Assembly: GCF_006345805.1 (NCBI RefSeq)
Contig: NW_021832122.1
Location: 87,216 to 151,215, forward strand
Source: Octopus sinensis
Taxonomy: Eukaryota
Direction of reading: 5' to 3'
DNA: 64,000 nt
The position numbers were made by a program, and so were the translations under genes. Under the pieces are notes generated by a model. It saw only the letters and a program-made list of their open reading frames with translations, was not told the origin of the DNA and searched no databases. Positions 18,165-53,980 of the stretch are shown piece after piece. Positions within the stretch are counted from its first letter, which is position 1, and each line of letters begins with the position of its first letter.

Positions 18165-19375
18165 TAACTATTTTGTTGAACTATTGAACTGTTTATTTTC
18201 TATGTAACAAACTCGTCACTAGATTAAAAGGGGGAGAGAAGAGCCAAACGAAACCAAGGAGACGGAAGAAACAAGTTTGTTTGCTGATTGGGGTCAACTC
18301 TAATGGGACACCAGATGTCCCTTCGATAAAAATAACGACTCCTTGCACCACTATTTATTTAAGTGATGCAACAGTTTTTCAATGGATCGTACCGATCCCT
18401 CCAGCTCTGGGGTTAGCTTGGATTTTAAGTCCAAGCCATGTGCCAGTTTAATGGCATATCTCCGCGTTTTCTCCAAAAGATCAATATGTTTCTTTCCTTC
18501 GCAGCTTCCGAACCATCCTTGAGATCCATAGATCAGGAAGGGTTCTATACACGCAGAGTATACGTATAAGAACGTTTCCGGTTTCAGCTGGAATCGCATC
18601 AGAGCTTTCAACATTTGGGTAGCCTTGTTCTTTCTCTTCCTTATATACATCTTGAATGAACCAGTTGCATCCACAACTATTCCGAGGTATTTAAGATCCT
18701 CCACGGGTTTTATCGCTCCGGTGTTAATACAAACATCAGGTTTCCTTCTCCTTTCACCAATCCAGCAAACAGTGCTTTTTTCAAAAGATAAAGACAAGCC
18801 TTTATCCTGGCACCATTTGCCAATTTTTTCGATATGACTATGGGTTCTTTTCCACGATATTGATTTGCTCATAGAGAAATCCATAATTAAAATATCATCT
18901 GCGTAGATGACCATCTCCATGCTAGGGAGATCCACTTGAGGAATGTCGCACATCACACAGTTAAATAAAAGTGGACTGATGACAGATCCCTGCGGAACTC
19001 CTCTCTTAAGCAAAATTCTCTTCGATAATTGGTTTCCGACCCGTACAAACGATTCTCTTCCCGAGAGGAAACTCTTCATCCAAACTAGGGCTGTCTTTCC
19101 AACGTTAAAATTGTATAAAGTTCGTAATAGCCCAACATGCCAGACGCTATCAAATGCTTTTGATATGTCTAGACATGCAGCCGTAAGATACTCTTTTTTC
19201 TTTGTGCTGTAGATATGGCCTCCTTTAACAGTGAAAAGCAATTTCCAGTGCCCTTGTTCCGCCGAAAACCCCATTGCTCTTTCAAGAGATACTGTTTATC
19301 TTCAATATAAGTTGATAGTCTTTTAAAGACAATTTTTTCCATGATTTTTGAGATAGAACAAGGCCCTTAATTTTT
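18165..19375 (-). mobile_element. 5'-truncated LINE (Jockey/I-group) with RT ORF
   Basis: 307-aa ORF with LDISKAFDSVWH, GVPQGSVISPLLF, YADD and KYLG, followed by a 3' UTR ending in AATAAA and short AGTTCAA-type tail repeats. Confidence 0.92.
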
Positions 19376-21770: not shown

Positions 21771-22039
21771 TCCCAACTAGATTTCTAGAATCAATCTAAT
21801 TTCGGCTAATTTAATAAACTAAATATTTTTGGAATAATTTTTTATCTATATCGAAATTTCAAATAAGAGATCGCATTATGATTAAAAATTAAATTATAGA
21901 CCAATTAGATGTTTATGATGACACAAAATTTATTGATTTATAACTCTCAAGTCAAAATAATTTCAATAATGTTGGCGGGGTCCGCTTCGGATGGATGGCT
22001 TCGTTAACTTCCAGTAAATTACAATTATCTCCGTTTGAT

Positions 22040-23270
22040 AAATTTTTAGCCTGTACGATCAATTCTCTCACCATTCAATTTACGGTACCTGGACGACGCG
22101 ACCATTGGCGGCTCTGTGGAATCCATCACCGAGGACCTATCCCGCCTAATCCCTGCTTTGGCAACCTTGGCCTAGAAGTTAACGTGAATAAATCGGAACT
22201 CCTAAACCTAAACTACCCTGAGGCGGATTTTCCGAATGTCAATATGATCATCCAAGACTGCATCACTGGTGCACATATAACCCAGCCATCAGAAGCAACC
22301 TTTCTTTGATGCCCTCTCGGACCAGCAGGTCTCCGAAATCATCTAGTCAACAAAGACCGCGAATTCTACCGCCTTACTAAAAGACTGCTGATGCTTGACT
22401 CACATAATGCCTTTTTTCTGCTGAAATACAGCCTTCACATGCCAAGATTCCTTTTCACTCTACGTTGCCTACCATGCTTCTCTCAGCCTGATATCTTGAA
22501 TTCCCTGGATTCTTATTTGAGATCCACAGCCAAATCAATTCTCAACGTAAAATTTGATAAAATTGGATGGAGACAAGGAAAACTTCCCGTCAGGTTTGGA
22601 GGTATTAGACTTCGCTCGCCAAAGGATCTGGCCCCGCAAGCATATTTTTCTTCGATGTGCAGCAGCCGTCACCTAGCCAATGAGATTCTACTCTCCTATA
22701 AAGAACTCTCATTGGACTTGCCGGTTGAAGTTTTATCGAATTTCTGGACCTACGCTAATTTACCCCTCCCGTCCGACATTTTCGTGCAACGGAAATGGAA
22801 TGAAATCTGGGCCGCCGACTCGTTTTTGAAGATGAAACCAGAGCTAGACCAACACCGGCTAGCGTGCCTACTCTTACCGGCTTACCGTCAACACTTGAGC
22901 CTGTCGGATTAGACCGTGGTAACGGCAAACGCCCAGACGGAATGACAATCTTTCCTTTTCGGGACGGCAAGTGCCTCGTCTGGGATGCTACGTGCATCGA
23001 TTCTTTCTCTCCATCGGCAATCATGTCATCTGCCACTTCCTCGGGTCCGCTGCGGAAAAGGCTGAGACGGCCAAAATTAGAAAATACCAAGAACTTGGAC
23101 GCCGCTTTATAATCGTACCAATCGCTTTGGAGACATCGGCCGTCGCCGGGCCTCTTACCTCGGCCTTCATCAGCGACATCGGGAGGAAATTGGCCCACAG
23201 GATGAAAGAGCCACTCGAGGTTTCGTGGCTATTGCAGCGGATATCCATCGCTATTCTCCGTGAGTAGTTT
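22040..23270 (+). mobile_element. Decayed CRE-like non-LTR retrotransposon (RT C-terminal part plus restriction-like endonuclease)
   Basis: LGLEVNVNKSEL, GWRQGKLPVRFGGI, GKRPDGMTIFPFRDGKCLVWDATCIDSFS, PIALETSAVAGP, WLLQRISIAILR. Confidence 0.85.
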
Positions 23271-24559
23271 TTAAGAGAACACCGAGGAGTATGATGGTCT
23301 AATCAGGCATGGGATCAAAATCATTGAAGAAGTGGTAAATTATCCTTGTAATTGAACAAAGTTATTCTTATTAAAACAATATGAAAACTAAGGAAAAAAG
23401 TGTCGTAACTTAATTCTTAGAGACAATAAAAGAGTGGCGTTGGTTATCTCTTTTAAAAGGAAGAGATTTAATGTCCAGCGGATTACAAATGAATTAATAA
23501 GTTTTAAATTAACTAGCAAAAATTAGTTTACATTGATTAAAAAAAAAGTTTTTGAAATTAAAAGTTAAACTAATAATTTGAACGTTAGGTTCTTGTCACG
23601 TTAATGCTGACTTGGGAGTCAGAATATATATTCAAGTTACCCATAATTAATCACTTATAGTCTATCTTGGAAAGATGTAGTTCGAGCCTCTTTTTGCAAG
23701 TTTCCAAACCCTTTTTCATCTGTTAACATAGCTTCAATTGACGTACTTGAAAATAAAGTTACATCCAAAGAGGGAAAGTTGGTTTTATTGCGCCATCGTC
23801 TAATACACATGACATATAATATTCCTCGGATTCTCTCTTCCATAGTCTCCTTAAACGCAACTTACATTATTGAGCATTCTGTCTTAGATTTATCAAAAAA
23901 TGAGTTCTCAATGAATTCTAAAAATGTAATTACTATAATTATAAAATAGTTAAATTTACGAGGTATTATTAACGTGGAAGAAAAACTGGTTTACCGCCAG
24001 CATCCTACCAACAAAGACCAGTTAAAATCATATTTTCCTTAATATCTTTAGGACCGTTTTAAATTATGTTTCTTCTGTTAATATCCGTGGAATTCCTTTT
24101 GCTTCTTTTTTTGAAAAATTTGTTTTGGAGAATTTTAAGAAGAACAGTGCTTTAGGTCGAAAAGCTATAACTTGGAGAGTCGAAAACGAGCTTCCCTAGT
24201 GTTTTCGATTTTCTGATATTTAAAATTTATACAAATATAGTTTTTATGTTCTTTTACTAATCAGATCTTCAGAATTATAAATTTTATTAAAAAATAGCCA
24301 CTATAATAAAACAAAAAATCGTAAATGAAGACAGAATATCAATGTAATTATTGGAATTTGAAATAATCCAAATTGGTTGATTTTTTTAATAAAAAAGTTA
24401 TTTGTGTTCGGGAAGAATTGTTTCATCCAGGTGAAATTGGGCATCGTCCCAACCTATCCGGACTGCTGGCAATAAAAAATCTTATTTTTTGTGTATTTCA
24501 ATGCAGAAAACGCGCTACGGCTCTCGATCCAATATAATCTCTCATCTGATCACAATCCC

Positions 24560-24990
24560 GAACTACAATCACCACTGGATATAAAAAAACAAGACATTTA
24601 TCAATTATAGGAATGACAGATGAGATGAATATCAACTACTTGCGACTTTTATCCTTATGTGCCTTTTTTGTTTAACAGTTTTACAAGCATGAACATTTTT
24701 GTCTTATCTTTTTGCTTCACGCTTCAGTTTCTTTGTACTTCAGCGATTTTTGCATTTTCTTTATATTTAGTAATATCTGGTTGCGTAATTTTCAAAATTC
24801 CTCTATGTTTTTAAGGTTGTTGAAGTTTTGTATTCTTAGTCTAAAGTCTTTCTGCTTTTCTGACATATTTTGTTGAATTGGTCACTGCATCCCATATCGT
24901 ATTTGCAGCTTTTGTCGTGACAATATCTTTGAGTACTTCTTGTACTTTTTAATGATTGAATGATTCAAGATTGAAAATTTTTTTTGTTTT
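24560..24990 (-). mobile_element. Probable decayed RTE-like LINE linker fragment
   Basis: Stop-riddled translation (KYKENAKIAE...DKTKMFMLVKLL) resembles the endonuclease-RT linker of RTE elements. Weak match. Confidence 0.3.
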
Positions 24991-25066
24991 CATTCGAATT
25001 TTTTCTGATTCAAAACTATGTCGTTTTGTGACATAGTTGATTAAATTATTTTAAATCTGCGGTTGT

Positions 25067-25539
25067 ATGAATAAATATTTAACTGTGGGGCTCGCTTCTT
25101 CTCTAGCACTAAGTTTATATTTAATTAAAGACAGACTTACTAATTCTGAATCAATTAAAGAAAAAAATTCAAAGTCGAAAGATTCCTTAAAGTGTACTAA
25201 AGTCGTAGAATATTGATTCTCTAGTTCCGCAGTTACAAAATCGACTTCCTTTAATAAATATTTCTGTTTTATTGAATGTTTCTCCAGAAGGTATTTTATT
25301 CTTGAAATAAGCAATTAGTGCCAGGATACTCTTATATCAAAAACCTAGTGGAGTGTATACCGGAAACAGTTTCTAGAATTTCCAGCTTCAGTAAACCTTT
25401 GATTACCCCAATTGCTGAGAAACTAAGGCAGGATGGAATTTTATCGCTAAACGATCTCTGGGATCGGCCGGCCAACGCTGTTCGCGGCCTAATAGCCGCC
25501 GGCTTTCATCATATCATGGAGTCCGGAGCTACTAACTAA
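25067..25539 (+). CDS. Chimeric partial LACTB duplicate with intact spliced ORF (137 aa)
   Basis: 25048-25456 aligns to LACTB 46092-46560 including both introns (25202-25232, 25291-25318). The spliced frame is open from ATG 25067 to TAA 25539. The last ~27 aa come from unrelated GC-rich DNA. Confidence 0.6.
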
Positions 25540-25588
25540 TTAATAAAAATTGGCTTCAGTATTCCCATAAATAATTTAAATCAGGATT

Positions 25589-26047
25589 GTAATTCGTACG
25601 GCTCACTCCTACAGGTAATATTTAATAAATCTGATATTTATCAGTAAACAATAATAAAGCCCATTAATTAACATATTTGCTTTATTTAAAGAAATGAAAA
25701 TAAAAAAGTCCAGGAGGAAAGACGAGCTCGATCTGCGAGCATTGCCAGAGAACGGTTAGGTCCCTGCTAAACGAATAGTTTGTGCGTTGCCGCGCATGAT
25801 TGTAACCAAACTAAGGCAGGCCAATTATTTGATATTGATTTTTGAAATGGCATGAAGATCGAAAACTATAGCGAGAAATGGTCAGAGAGACTAACAGTCA
25901 TATCGCTGTAGAAAAAGAGCTGAGGAGTCAGTTTTTTCACTGTAATAAGACAAGGGAAAACATCGTGGTTAGACAAGTCAGCGGTTTAGTTTCCCAAAAG
26001 AGGGAAAATCTTAATTATTGGATTAGGGTAATTTGACTATGAGTTGC
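25589..26047 (+). ncRNA. Candidate nuclear RNase P RNA (divergent)
   Basis: P1 GUAAUUCG(25589)/UGAGUUGC(26040); P2 ACUCCU(A)CAG(25605)/CUGAGGAGU(25920); CR-I-like GGAAAGACGAG(25716) pairing with UUUGACU(26032) as P4; P7 UCGAUCU/AGAUCGA; P10/11 CAUUGCCA/UGGCAUG enclosing CR-II CAGAGAA, a P12 hairpin and CR-III UGAAA; CR-IV-like AGAAAAAG. The order matches eukaryotic RPR. No covariance model was run. Confidence 0.65.
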
Positions 26048-26528
26048 TTTTATAGTAACAATAGTTCCCTATTATCAAAATAAGATAATAATTTATGGAT
26101 ATTATTCATAAACGACTATTTCATAAAATTTATTTTCATTAATAACACGAGATCCATTTTCCTGGCAGAGAAAAATACCGCAGATAATCTCTGCATGATA
26201 ATTAAGCACCAAACTATTATTATCTGACCGCATACGTATATTTTAATTAATAATTTGTATTCATGCGTTTCAAAATTTTACACATTCAGATCAAAAAAAG
26301 ATTATGTTTAAATCTCAGTAAATTATAACAAATCAGATTTACTTTTTCAAAAAATTTTTCGATTGGTAAATATATAATAAAAAAATACCACTAATTCTTA
26401 TTTGAGTTAAAAAGCTTTTAAAATTTTTAGAAAATACGATTATTGTAGGTTCGAAAAATCCCACTACTATTCCTAGATTTTAAAACTAGAAAAGTTTAAT
26501 TCAGAAATGTAAATTCAGCAATAAATGT

Positions 26529-27806
26529 TCAAGTATTCATATAATCATATATTCGATCGTAATAATCCTCCTTGATTGAACGCCCCGCCATATTCACATC
26601 CACTCCAATTTTCTCAGTACGTCTTGGTACATTTAAAAGCTGTGCCACATTCTTCAAAAAATCAGGATTACATGAAATATCCAAATTATCGAACAAATCA
26701 ATGCTCTCACTGAGCCACATGATATTCTGAGTCGCAGTAGGAGACGAATTTCCATCAATATAAAGAGAAAATAAAGAATTGAGTTGAAAACAAGCAAATT
26801 TTGCCTTTGTCCCGTCCACGAGAATACATTGAGTGACCATTGGGTAAGGAATGTCCAGTCCCTCAAAAGGAAAAAAATTCATGTAATGAGCAGAACTCAG
26901 TGCCTGAGCAAAATTAAGTAAAAGTCCGCGGTGTCCCCAATTTCCGTTTACGTGGTGAAGTGCAAGAAGAGGTGCCATAAATGGATCCCCAATTCTAAAC
27001 CCAGGCAAAATTTCGGGGATTATTGATTTTCTACATATTCCATATCTTCCTGGGGGGATGGACAACGTGGGGAAAATAGATTCTTTGCATAAATCGTCAT
27101 TGATTTGAAGATTTGGGAATATTTCTCGCCTCGATCTGATTTGGCGGTGACATATTTCGTCGATGTAAAACCGACAGAGTCCAGAATTCCGTCTTCCAGA
27201 ACAATTTCCGCTGACTGGACGAGTAAAATGGGTTCTAATATCAACTGAGTCGTCAAATTGCCACAAATCGTCAAATTTTGAATTTTTTATTGCACATCCG
27301 GTAAAATAGTCAAATATAGCTCTAAAAATTACGGCAGAAAGGTCAATTGCAGAAGGAAGACTTCTAAGAGACTTTACATTATAAAAATTCATGAGGAATT
27401 CTAATTTTGAATTTACGGAATTATTCAAATTGGTCAACTCATTTGTGGAAATATCAACGGAGGTGACGTTTGTCGGAAGACCTTTAACAATGTGAGTTCT
27501 TGTCAGATTTTGGAGAACTTCCAAACTGTATTTTTGATGGGATTTTGCATTAAGAATCCAAAAAACTTGTTTTTCATTTCCAGAATAATATTTTAAACGC
27601 TTTTCAAGATTTGGCCTATTTTTTAAATTTTTTCCAAATCTGTGCAAATTCCAAGCTTCGTAATCGGGGAGTTGACCCCATTCACCTGCATTAAAAATAA
27701 AGTTATTACCTGGTGGAAAGCGTAGTACAACTGGCGGATACAGAGATTGAACCTCTGTAATCAAAGAACAAAATGTTCTTTTATAAAACTTGCACATGAA
27801 AAACAT
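26529..27806 (-). CDS. MRPS30: Mitoribosomal protein mS30/mL65, single exon, 425 aa
   Basis: LYPPV near the N-terminus and PYPMVTQCILVDGTKAKFACFQLNSL...NIMWLSESIDLF, which matches the mL65/mL37 C-terminal pattern. Uninterrupted ORF. Confidence 0.7.
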   Translation of the reverse strand: MFFMCKFYKRTFCSLITEVQSLYPPVVLRFPPGNNFIFNAGEWGQLPDYEAWNLHRFGKNLKNRPNLEKRLKYYSGNEKQVFWILNAKSHQKYSLEVLQNLTRTHIVKGLPTNVTSVDISTNELTNLNNSVNSKLEFLMNFYNVKSLRSLPSAIDLSAVIFRAIFDYFTGCAIKNSKFDDLWQFDDSVDIRTHFTRPVSGNCSGRRNSGLCRFYIDEICHRQIRSRREIFPNLQINDDLCKESIFPTLSIPPGRYGICRKSIIPEILPGFRIGDPFMAPLLALHHVNGNWGHRGLLLNFAQALSSAHYMNFFPFEGLDIPYPMVTQCILVDGTKAKFACFQLNSLFSLYIDGNSSPTATQNIMWLSESIDLFDNLDISCNPDFLKNVAQLLNVPRRTEKIGVDVNMAGRSIKEDYYDRIYDYMNT

Positions 27807-27963
27807 TAAATTAAATTTATTTAAAATAAGATAATAAAAATGCTATAAAGTATAAATGCAAATAAAACAAAAAAACCAAATCAAAAAGACGGAAATTTAT
27901 TAAATAAATGAATAATAGAATAACCGTTAATAAGCCATAAATAATAAATAACAATTGCTTGAA

Positions 27964-45742: not shown

Positions 45743-46110
45743 TTGGTATCCATAGAAAATATTTTATTAATTTTTTTTATAAATAACCATTAATGATATT
45801 AAATTAATTAAGATCGATTAATTGAAGGGAAGCCCAGCAGCCTGGCGGATTGCCAAACTGTTTCCCCGGATAACGGCGATCGAGAACCGTTGCAATAACT
45901 AGTTTTAAATAATATTTATTAAAAAAATTCAATTGTGTAATTCTAACTTATCAAATTGTTATCCCTGAAAATGTAATGACAGAGTTGATAAAATTATTTT
46001 ATATTAAATGTTTTCATAAAATATTGTTTTAAATAATATTAACATTATATTAAAAATTTATTTTTTACCTGAGAATTTATTAGATATTTATATTTTAAAT
46101 CTGCGGTTGT

Positions 46111-47458
46111 ATGAATAATATTGGTAAATATTTAACTCTGGGGGTCGCTTCTACTCTAGCATTCAGTTTATATCCAATTAAACACAATCCTACTAATTCT
46201 GAATCAACGAATGAAAAAATTTCTACAAAGTTAATCAATCGCGACTCTTACTCTGACATAATTTCAAAGTCCAAAGATTACTTACAATATACTAAAGTCG
46301 TAAAATGTTGATTCTCTAGTTTTTTAGTTAAAATATGGACTTCCTTGTATAGCTATTTCCGTTTCCGTGAATGGTTCTATTGTTTGGGCAGAAGGTATTT
46401 TTATTTTTGAAGTGAGCAATTAGGGCTAGGATACTCTGATATCGAAAACCTAGTCGAGTGTAAACCAGAAACAGTTTTTAGAATTGGGAGCATCAGTAAA
46501 CCCTTGACTGCTGCAATTGTCGGGAAATTAATACAGGAAGGACTTTTATCTTTAGACGATCCTATTTCGAAGTACAATATTGACTGGCCCGCTAAATTCA
46601 TTGACGGAAATGAAGTAAAATATGTTCAAATTATATAACTGTGTTCTATTACGTGTCGACACCTCATGTCGCACTCGAGTGGAATCCGCCACTACAATAA
46701 TCCAACTTCTGAAATTGACGAATTTCACATCAAACAGTGTTACAAGGACGTGAAAAGTGCACTTACCCTATTTAAGGATGATCCTTTACTTTTTATTCCA
46801 GGTTGATTTTGAAATGATTTTGGTCCTGTATAGGAACGAGAACCCATTACAGTACTTTTGCTTGGACATTGGTATCAGGGATATGTGAGTCTGTAACAAA
46901 AAAATCGTTTCCATCACTTCTTAGAGAACTTTTTGATTCTCTTTCAATGAACGACACTTTTCTCGATAAAAACGACACAATAATTTTCCACAGAACTCGG
47001 TTGTAATTGAAATTAGTACTATTACATATAGATATTACAAATTTAATTCTTGTAATGAAATCGTGAACTCACCATACGCTGAATCGACTCATAAATATGC
47101 GGGAGGTGGAATTTTGTCATCAGTTTTGGACATAAACGTGTTTGCCAATGCTATGCTGGAGAGTTATGAAGCTAATTCAAATAGTTATCTATCTGCTACC
47201 ATTGTTTCTGAACTGTGGTCCCCACATTATAAATCAAAGAAAGACTATTTTGGACTTGGATGGTTTATTTCTGATCATCCACGTGCCCCAAAGTATATTT
47301 ACCACACAGGATGTTCAGTTGGAGGCAGTTCTGTGGTACTAATACAACCTACGGATAAAAATTCACAAATTCGTGGAGTTGTATGTATAATGACTAACGT
47401 TGATGGAATCAATTTACTTAGCAGTGCAAAAAGAATTGCTTCTGACTTTTTTAAATGA
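46111..47458 (+). CDS. LACTB: Serine beta-lactamase-like protein LACTB, 6 exons
   Basis: VWAEGLGYSDIEN...FRIGSISK (SxxK), HLMSHSSGIRHY, YST, KYAGGGILSSV.D, HTG. One intron (46615-46641) apparently ends in TG. Confidence 0.92.
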
Positions 47459-52332: not shown

Positions 52333-53980
52333 CAGTCCGACCTCTAAATGGGGCACTAAGTGCCTCAAATCAGAGGTTTCCCCAAAAAAGAGGTTTTTCA
52401 AAAAGCTCAATAAATAAAGAAAAAAAACATTATTTTTTAAAATAATCAGTTAATTTTTCTCCATATTTATATTTATTTTTAATTCCTAATGACACTTTCT
52501 TTCTGAATTCATAAAAATCATGAAGAAAATCTGGAATCAAATCAAAGATGTTTGTCTCTAAGTTTTCCATCAAACTTAAAATTTGTGATATTGATGGTTC
52601 GCAGCTTATATTCTCATAGATATTGGATCATTATCTTCTATTTCATCAAAACATTCATCAATAACATTATTAAATATTTCTTCAGATGATTCATTTATGC
52701 AACTCGAGTCTGATGGAGATTGTCGAAAAACCTTTTGCCAGCAGTTATAAATAATATCCGCAGATACATTATTCCAAGCATCTGAGATTATTGTTACCAC
52801 TTGCCGCAAATTTAATTTGTATAAAAAATCAATTAGACAATTCAAATAATTATCCTTGAAATTTTTAATGATTCCAGCATCCAATGGTTGAAGTATTGGT
52901 GTCGTATTTTTTGGTAAAAATAAAAAATCAACGTTGCTAAATGTCGATATTTTGTGGCAAGCAGCGTTATCTAATAACATTAAGATTTTTCTTTTTTGAA
53001 TAATCATTTTTTCATTAATTTTTTTGAGCCAGGATATAAAAATGTCTCTTGTCATCCACGCATTTTTGGACGAAGAGTATAAAATTCCATAAATTTCGGG
53101 AGAAAATTTTTTGAAACATCTAGGATTTCTATATTTTCCGATTATTAATGGTTCAAATTTTTCTCCAGTGTAACTACAGCATAGATGAAGAGTAACTTTA
53201 TCTTTACTCCTTTTAAAGCCCCGTGCCGAATCACCAGTTTTCACGAATGATTTACGTGGGGTAAGTTTGATAAAAAGAGAAGTTTCGTCACAATTAAAAA
53301 TGTTCTCCTTTCCATATTGTTCAACTTTGATATTTAATTCTGATAAAAAATTCAAAATTATCGCATGATCAGCAGATGCGGATTCGCCTGACAATGTTCG
53401 GAATTTTAATTCATGCCTCTGCTTGAATTTTCTAACCATCCATTTGAAGCTTTAAACTTGTTTAAGCCCATTCTCGAAAAAACAGTTAGGGAAATTTTTT
53501 TTAAAAGAGTTCCAGAAACTGGAACATTCTGATCCCTTAGACGCTGAAAAATATCAAGGACTTTTTCATCAAATCCGTTTTTATTTTCACTTAATGATGA
53601 GGAAAGAAATCCTTTTTTGATAAATGGAAGAATATTCTTTTTTATACGAAAAATAGTTCCCTTGCTAGTATTGTACATTATGGATAATCTCCTCTCAGAA
53701 TGTTCTTTCTTTAAAAGATGATCAGCAATCTTCAACTTGGTTTCATAATTCAAAGGCATTACACAAGAAATTTAAAATGAAACGTGTCTTAAAATATTTA
53801 TTTTTTAAATTGGTATAATTAATTTTATTTAATAAAAAATCAATGACCCAAATAGGAATGTTAAAATTAATTGATTTTTGATAATTTGGTTAAAAAAATT
53901 TATAATGCCCCAAAACAGAGTTTTCCCCAAAAAAGAGGTGCCCCACCCCTGGAGGTGCGCCCCAATTAGAGGTCGGATTG
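52333..53980 (-). mobile_element. Near-complete Tigger/pogo DNA transposon (1648 bp)
   Basis: TIRs CAGTCCGACCTCTAAATGGGGC and CAATCCGACCTCTAATTGGGGC, a TA on both sides, HTH ORF 53406-53759 and DDE_1 ORF 52606-53439 (NCDET, LLDN, QPLDAG). The two ORFs are separated by one missing A at ~53430. Confidence 0.95.

Follow-up and report, generated by a model that had tools for sequence, protein, structure and literature searches.

The analysed window, by which we mean the whole stretch of 64,000 nucleotides, has a GC content of approximately 32%, uses the standard genetic code and contains animal-type genes together with remnants of reverse transcriptase and DDE transposase. MCM2 lies at approximately 1.9-4.4 kb, an aminotransferase gene is also present according to its Pfam match, and decayed reverse-transcriptase ORFs are seen at 21.9-23.6 kb, upstream of the LACTB fragment described below. 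A ciliate genetic code was ruled out by standard-code ORFs with Pfam matches (MCM, PDCD9, aminotransferase, RT, DDE), and the DNA is metazoan. The introns of MCM2 and LACTB measure about 20-35 nt, in agreement with the figure of about 25 nt given in a preliminary description of this DNA, and animal introns of such size are known only from myxobolid myxozoans and Dicyema japonicum (PMC13644364). The AAA domain of MCM2 shares 55% identity with its Henneguya counterpart and 60-65% with bilaterian sequences; from intron length and this comparison a dicyemid-like lineage may be guessed. The top MCM2 match in the protein collection is 65% identical, with no close relative there, the MRPS30 neighbour of the locus has zero matches at E<=1e-5 among 5.8 billion proteins, and an exact-pattern scan of metagenome contigs for relatives returned zero matches.

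The locus itself combines a fragment of the LACTB gene with a candidate RNase P RNA (RPR) on the same strand, and includes the following features.

24953-25066, forward strand: promoter-proximal DNA and 5' UTR of the LACTB duplicate, placed by alignment to the parent
25067-25539, forward strand: spliced chimeric ORF of 135 codons, LACTB-derived up to 25456
25067-25201, 25233-25290 and 25325-25539, forward strand: exons of this ORF, with ATG at 25067 and stop codon TAA at 25537-25539
25202-25232 (31 nt) and 25291-25324 (34 nt), forward strand: introns 1 and 2, both GT..AG
25457-25539, forward strand: GC-rich block (57% GC), the non-LACTB tail of the ORF, at -142 to -60 of the RPR
25542-25547, forward strand: AATAAA, 2 nt after the ORF stop
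25566-25582, forward strand: TATA-like A/T block CATAAATAATTTAAATC at -32 to -17 of P1, of low specificity in AT-rich DNA
25599-26047, forward strand: putative RNase P RNA homolog, matched by a descriptor and without an Rfam match
26048-26051, forward strand: terminator-like T4 run, beginning one base after the P1 3' strand
26532-27842, reverse strand: PDCD9/MRPS30 ORF, the next gene after the RPR
46111-47458, forward strand: intact parent LACTB gene, ATG at 46111 and stop codon TGA at 47456-47458, source of the duplicate

The derivation of the ORF from LACTB, proposed in the preliminary description, was confirmed by a PDB search, in which residues GYSYIKNLVECIPETVSRISSFSKPLITPIAEKLRQDGILSL match human LACTB (E=0.004, the best three matches being LACTB), and by a BLAST match to the complete LACTB gene of the same window, where 25047-25456 and 46091-46561 share 72% DNA identity with gaps counted. 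A tblastn search with human LACTB as query recovered the complete gene (46.3-47.5 kb) and, as a further short match, 25324-25452. Looser settings stretch the DNA match upstream to 24953, with 65% identity between 24953-25097 and 45986-46150. The exons are 78-85% identical to the parent over aligned bases, the introns are retained and 81-85% identical, and the homology stops sharply at 25456. The ORF is a DNA-level duplicate of about 500 bp (24953-25456) that comprises promoter-proximal DNA (approximately 115 nt of upstream LACTB DNA), exons 1 and 2 and the first 132 nt of exon 3, while the parent sits 21 kb downstream. The 46 nt before the fragment ATG show 76% identity with the parent, and 25 of them match perfectly in one block; promoter constraint was rejected as the cause of this block, such a length being expected by chance at this divergence. 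The term "chimeric" is equally apt, given that homology ends at 25456 and the last 27 codons cross the unrelated GC-rich block. This block carries two GCCGGC palindromes (25467 and 25498) and has neither a paralog in the window nor a Pfam or Rfam match; its interpretation as a structured RNA or a second CR-I was discarded (fold z-score -1.6; mismatches at 4 of 7 CR-I positions).

At the protein level the fragment is in neutral, AT-biased drift and without constraint. Its dN/dS against the parent is 0.86, the differences are distributed over codon positions as 23/18/18, and parental G/C sites are changed at 31% versus 10-13% of A/T sites. The ORF contains the N-terminal segment and approximately 45 residues around the SxxK motif (SFSK) instead of a complete beta-lactamase fold, and a Pfam search with it gave no match. 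The ATG, both GT..AG pairs and the open frame are kept, and the exon gaps of 9, 42 and 9 nt are all multiples of three. In simulations of neutral substitution the frame survives in 4-18% of trials, according to the share of changes placed on the fragment, and the joint neutral probability of frame, splice sites, ATG and in-frame indels is roughly estimated at 0.003-0.03, a value which counts at least one in-frame deletion and is subject to selection bias, since intact frames catch a reader's eye. The intact frame and splice sites hint at a maintained transcription unit, the residual signal being real but modest. The fragment resembles partial gene duplicates and pseudogene fragments in being a 500-bp copy with introns, a sharp breakpoint at 25456 and foreign read-through, as well as in a dN/dS near 1 with AT-biased decay, but differs from them in the frame, start codon and splice sites that stay intact at approximately 18% divergence.

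In the Rfam search no RNase P or MRP RNA was detected in the whole window at the gathering score, and the slices 24500-27000, 25560-26090 and 25696-25830 (135-2501 nt) gave no match at E<=10. The identity of the RPR was deduced from motifs and helices only, by means of a descriptor of conserved regions (CR) and helices built from the eukaryotic consensus; its patterns were cross-checked in part, by eye, against human and E. coli sequences and the salmon-louse RPRs (PMC4287351 S6). The descriptor consists of CR-I (GNAANNUCNGNG, at most 2 mismatches), an S-domain with AGAGAAC flanked by the P10/11 and P12 helices, CR-IV (AGNNNNAUNNNNGANG, at most 1 mismatch), P2 formed with CR-IV positions 11-19 and one bulge at most, CR-V (ACNNNANNNNGNNUA, at most 1 mismatch), P4 with 6 or more of 7 pairs, and P1 with 6 pairs directly outside P2 and CR-V. 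Across both strands of the window it has a single match, at 25599-26046, and when about 18 Mb of Markov sequence was generated for each of two composition models, 0 sequences passed all steps; the chance expectation, taken as the product of the stepwise pass rates, is approximately 1e-5 to 3e-5 matches per window. The thresholds were fixed after the candidate was seen, and the match is still significant when two to three orders of magnitude are allowed for this post-hoc choice.

Every genome is expected to carry at least one RPR. The segment 25599-26047 is very probably a real but very divergent homolog of it. The candidate proposed in the preliminary description is supported by the single descriptor match in the window and has no Rfam match. 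The fold energy is -87.7 kcal/mol when constrained to the model versus an MFE of -102.7, the fold z-score is -1.8, and no open frame underlies the candidate on either strand. RNase MRP RNA was rejected informally: a GARAR loop does not follow CR-I, and both the AGAGAAC internal loop and the combination of CR-IV with P2 point to P RNA. Neither a second RPR copy nor a second GC-rich block was found within the window. The modelled elements of the RNA are as follows.

25599-25604 with 26041-26046, forward strand: P1, CGGCUC with GAGUUG, 6 pairs of which 2 are G-U; chance 0.02-0.03
25605-25614 with 25920-25928, forward strand: P2, nine Watson-Crick pairs and one bulged A; conditional chance 0.07-0.18
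25615-25662, forward strand: P3-like hairpin, 17% GC, without independent support
25703-25714, forward strand: CR-I, AAAAAGUCCAGG, 5 of 7 specified positions; AGU/GGU uridine and flanking A-G present
25707-25713 with 26032-26038, forward strand: P4, 6 of 7 pairs; chance given the motifs approximately 0.04
25726-25740, forward strand: hairpin
25742-25746 with 25815-25819, forward strand: P10/11
25747-25753, forward strand: CR-II
25754-25758 with 25803-25807, forward strand: P12
25808-25814, forward strand: CR-III
25835-25862, forward strand: inserted hairpin with the T5 run
25910-25925, forward strand: CR-IV, AGAAAAAGAGCUGAGG, 1 mismatch, leading into the P2 3' strand
25929-25942, forward strand: hairpin CAGU-UUUUUC-ACUG with the T6 run in its loop, directly after the P2 3' strand
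26025-26039, forward strand: CR-V, AGGGUAAUUUGACUA, 5 of 6 specified positions

The register of P2 is that of the human RPR, and AGAAAAAGAGCUGAGGAGU agrees with the human CR-IV and P2 3' strand at 12 of 18 positions. The stretch 25742-25819 reads UUGCC-AGAGAAC-GGUUA...UAACC-AAACUAA-GGCAG and has the S-domain topology, the same helix test being passed by 12-15% of random AGAGAAC sites; CR-II AGAGAAC is identical in human RPPH1. At the 3' end CR-V AGGGUAAUUUGACUA is followed by UGAGUUGC and then by UUUU. Human RPPH1 has GGAAGGUCUGAG at CR-I. The salmon-louse RNA also carries GGAAGGUCUGAG there (PMC4287351 S6). In the candidate the G10-to-A change of CR-I is paired by U in CR-V; one G-C pair of P4 is now A-U, i.e., both sides are changed. 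Four consensus positions depart in all (two in CR-I, one in CR-IV and one in CR-V), which together with the missing Rfam match may be signs of decay or of extreme divergence in the core. The model is interrupted by three AU-rich expansions (25663-25702, 25823-25909 and 25929-26024), of which the last two hold the T5 and T6 runs.

These runs, already pointed out in the preliminary description, were read directly from the sequence at 25839-25843 (gaTTTTTgaa) and 25932-25937 (cagTTTTTTcac) and are the only sense-strand runs of four or more T between 25599 and 26047, so the candidate departs from a type-3 Pol III gene, which is free of internal T>=4 runs. Every known Pol III would be stopped by an internal T5 or T6. 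Because the AU-rich expansions carry both, Pol III would be predicted to end most transcripts early, and the runs are without explanation under Pol III: to judge from the sequence, the copy would be either crippled or made by Pol II. If T5 and T6 are read through, the T4 run at the 3' end would be no terminator either. The idea that Pol III left its footprint in a scarcity of sense-strand T-runs was considered and dropped, as the counts match the composition of the RNA itself and the depletion is not significant. Removal of the runs by tiny spliceosomal introns was rejected as well, there being no suitable GT..AG around T5 and, for T6, one of 19-23 nt that cuts P2.

The 49 nt counted in the preliminary description between the ORF stop and 25589 (positions 25540-25588) are correct; in the structural model P1 starts at 25599, 59 nt after the stop. 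The conclusion drawn there, that little room is left for a promoter, fails because LACTB homology ends at 25456: P1 is preceded by 142 nt of non-LACTB DNA, a promoter-sized stretch into which the ORF tail reads through, and this tail may well overlap the upstream region of the RPR itself. By chance, a T4 run would lie 0-4 nt from a randomly chosen position with a probability of 0.08. In the intact LACTB and MRPS30 genes the hexamer is ATTAAA and stands 37 and 28 nt past the respective stops, and, because AATAAA stands 2 nt after the stop of the ORF, the fragment mRNA would probably be cut approximately 25-40 nt before the RPR. Two further AATAAA hexamers occur inside the RPR (25625 and 25654). 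No other Pol III gene (U6, 7SK, MRP or tRNA) that could define the PSE of the lineage, an element of type-3 Pol III genes placed at about -50 to -70, was found in the window. Downstream of the RPR there is no same-strand exon or ORF, and the RPR is not intronic; the rest of LACTB, which would make it so, was sought there, and the remaining exons occur only at 46.3-47.5 kb.

[quoted passage not shown] The arthropod state was proposed to have arisen by duplication and subsequent loss of the Pol III signals (PMC4287351), and the Pol II-hosted RPR1 of the salmon louse carries T4-T5 runs (PMC4287351 S6; OCR text). With canonical nuclear RPR genes (human RPPH1, RF00009; type-3 Pol III) the candidate, as modelled, shares the order CR-I, CR-II, CR-III, CR-IV and CR-V, the topology of P1, P2, the P4 pseudoknot, P10/11 and P12, and a TATA-like box some 25-30 nt upstream with a T4 run after the 3' end. 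It differs from them in CR-I, which is AAAGUCC, the form of bacterial and MRP RNAs, where metazoan RPRs have AAGGUCU, in a single hairpin in place of P8 and P9, and in the three AU-rich expansions, the internal T5 and T6 and the lack of Rfam recognition. The embedded RPRs of insects and crustaceans are similar in orientation with respect to an upstream Pol II-type gene and in the T-runs inside. Unlike them, the candidate follows a stop codon and AATAAA, is outside an intron, and has a correctly placed T-run and a TATA-like box, the latter of low specificity; its "host" is a truncated pseudogene-like duplicate and not a highly expressed housekeeping gene, and its lineage is non-arthropod, the 20-35-nt introns suggesting a dicyemid or myxobolid (PMC13644364).

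The explanation that we prefer, with about even confidence, is that of a very divergent RPR copy in stand-alone layout whose adjacency to the LACTB fragment is coincidental. The RPR would keep the ordinary arrangement of a TATA-like box, 142 nt of its own upstream DNA and T4 at its end, and the LACTB segmental duplication of about 500 bp would have landed beside it, after which the fragment would drift and read through foreign upstream DNA to the first stop, where it would find an AATAAA of its own. Fragment and RPR would then be neighbours and not host and passenger. The flank signals, together with the prior from all other non-arthropod animals, favour this layout; use of the promoter and activity of the RPR we infer from sequence. 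Within the layout, the simplest reading, because T5 and T6 would end most Pol III transcripts, is a crippled or inactive copy with the working copy elsewhere in the genome, which we propose tentatively; somewhat less probable is an active gene whose own promoter is used by a polymerase insensitive to T-runs. Against the stand-alone explanation it must be said that the modelled RPR helices seem well preserved, unlike those of a long-dead copy, that a second RPR copy elsewhere is an assumption, and that TATA-like sequences are common in this AT-rich DNA.

The preliminary description had instead suggested that the RPR may come from a LACTB-derived Pol II transcript, which we consider unlikely. 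The RNA would be freed from either the 3' UTR or read-through transcripts beyond the poly(A) site and trimmed to the protein-protected P1. The TATA-like box and T4 would be left over from an earlier Pol III gene, in which the duplicated promoter would have let T-runs accumulate. Such a host could account for the internal T5 and T6, which clash with efficient Pol III transcription, and it can draw on the same orientation of the duplicate, the 59 nt from stop to P1 and the approximately 115 nt of LACTB upstream DNA, on T-runs of the kind seen in salmon-louse RPR1 and on the duplication and signal loss proposed for arthropods (PMC4287351). That the fragment keeps its frame and splice sites, along with the ATG and in-frame indels, despite a dN/dS of 0.86 lends the model some support, and the preliminary description explained frame and splice sites by the host role. 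This role does not in itself lead one to expect an open frame, however, since the RPR would be set free in the nucleus, and the protein of the fragment is not conserved. The model is further opposed by the AATAAA 2 nt past the stop and the two others inside the RPR, by the TATA-like box and T4 run at the positions of a stand-alone gene, by the 142 nt available for a promoter, by the non-intronic position with no downstream exon found, and by the Pol III-type genes of the non-pancrustacean animals. An evolutionary version of this idea, which on sequence grounds appears improbable to a similar degree, is that a non-arthropod animal, probably a dicyemid, is in the middle of switching its RPR from Pol III to Pol II: a cassette of LACTB promoter and exons would have landed 142 nt upstream and would drive read-through across the RPR, the read-through would have relaxed the ban on internal T-runs, and TATA and T4 would remain as relics.

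It is likewise doubtful that the candidate is no RNase P RNA at all and owes its motifs to chance resemblance in non-coding, moderately GC-rich DNA. The failure of RNaseP_nuc, RNase_MRP and all other Rfam models even at E<=10 would fit this view, as would the fold z-score of only -1.8, the departures at 2 of 7 specified positions of CR-I and at one each in CR-IV and CR-V, the three AU-rich stretches of about 40-95 nt that interrupt the model without explanation, the S-domain step, which is barely selective (15% of random anchors pass), and the thresholds chosen with the candidate in view. The descriptor expectation per window, however, amounts to at most approximately 0.03 across a genome of about 1000 windows, P1 and P2 are placed exactly as RPR architecture demands, CR-IV and P2 resemble the human sequence, and coding potential is absent from both strands. 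The remaining probability belongs to other readings, among them a young functional gene derived from LACTB and unrelated to the RPR. Its product would be a short protein, anchored in the membrane, with the N-terminal hydrophobic segment and the SxxK region, and selection on it would be relaxed or positive. Such a gene, the least probable of the readings named, could explain the frame open through two introns, the in-frame indels, the kept ATG and splice sites and the AATAAA right after the stop; it is opposed by the dN/dS of 0.86 without codon-position bias, by the end of the protein approximately 45 residues into the beta-lactamase fold, with a tail read through into unrelated DNA, and by the absence of a Pfam match.

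An inactive copy would make the locus a commonplace mosaic of duplicated pieces. Should the RPR call be correct, a first handle would be gained on RNase P RNA in an extremely reduced, fast-evolving animal lineage, in which the standard covariance model fails, and the AU-rich expansions would be unusual for a metazoan RPR. If, in addition, the RNA is functional, T5 and T6 would force a route other than Pol III, which would mean that Pol II-made RNase P RNA arose in animals a second time, independently, and the locus might then be a transitional state showing how the arthropod arrangement came about.

Between the partial duplicate of the LACTB gene (the LACTB fragment) and the candidate RNase P RNA (RPR) lies a GC-rich block, which is listed below together with the neighbouring protein genes and mobile-element remnants.

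18354-19295, minus strand: RVT_1 ORF, a mobile-element remnant
21900-23650, plus strand: reverse-transcriptase-like frame with a YLDD motif, stop-riddled, just upstream of the LACTB fragment
25457-25539: GC-rich block of 83 nt, 57% GC versus 32% GC in the genome
26532-27842, minus strand: PDCD9 ORF (mitochondrial ribosomal protein S30), a single exon of 437 codons (Pfam PDCD9, E=3.6e-13)
46111-47458, plus strand: LACTB, the parent of the fragment, apparently intact, with introns of ~27-35 nt
52609-53451, minus strand: DDE_1 (pogo-type) transposase ORF, a mobile-element remnant

The start of the GC-rich block coincides exactly with the LACTB breakpoint, where homology to the parent gene ends, and the block occupies positions -142 to -60 relative to the RPR. 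It carries two GCCGGC palindromes (at 25467 and 25498), has no paralog within the window and no Pfam or Rfam match, and its fold is not significant. The block could be captured DNA, or it could serve the RPR as a promoter or enhancer element.

The 13-mer AAACTAAGGCAGG is shared by exon 3 of the LACTB fragment (25420-25432) and the RPR (25808-25820); in the RPR it covers CR-III and the 3' strand of P10/11. The chance probability of a 13-mer common to these two stretches is ~0.009, and the parent LACTB differs from it at 3 of the 13 positions; the sharing could reflect micro-conversion, mimicry or coincidence. The parent gene also has an ATTAAA 37 nt past its stop.

Two small elements are found inside the RPR itself. 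Immediately 3' of a CAG, GTAATATTTAATAAATCTGATATTTATCAG (25615-25644) forms a 30-nt GT..AG unit, equal in length to the introns of this genome, and coincides with the P3-like hairpin's 5' half. The other is the hairpin GGUC-AGAGA-GACU (25880-25892) within the first 3' insertion. Its loop is reminiscent of the GARAR loop in P8 of RNase MRP, yet the hairpin's location in the RPR is wrong for that element. Across the whole 64-kb window no tRNA genes were found, and the Rfam search gave zero matches at gathering score.

The PDCD9/S30 ORF is convergent with the RPR, which lies on the plus strand, their 3' ends being ~430 nt apart, and it is extremely divergent, since a search of 5.8 billion proteins gave no homolog at E<=1e-5. 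For the MCM2 gene of the window the closest match (65% identity) is located on a contig of Logan SRR25749194 (L001), in which exon-sized ORFs are separated by 33-46 nt; this contig could come from a distant relative whose introns are of a similarly tiny size.
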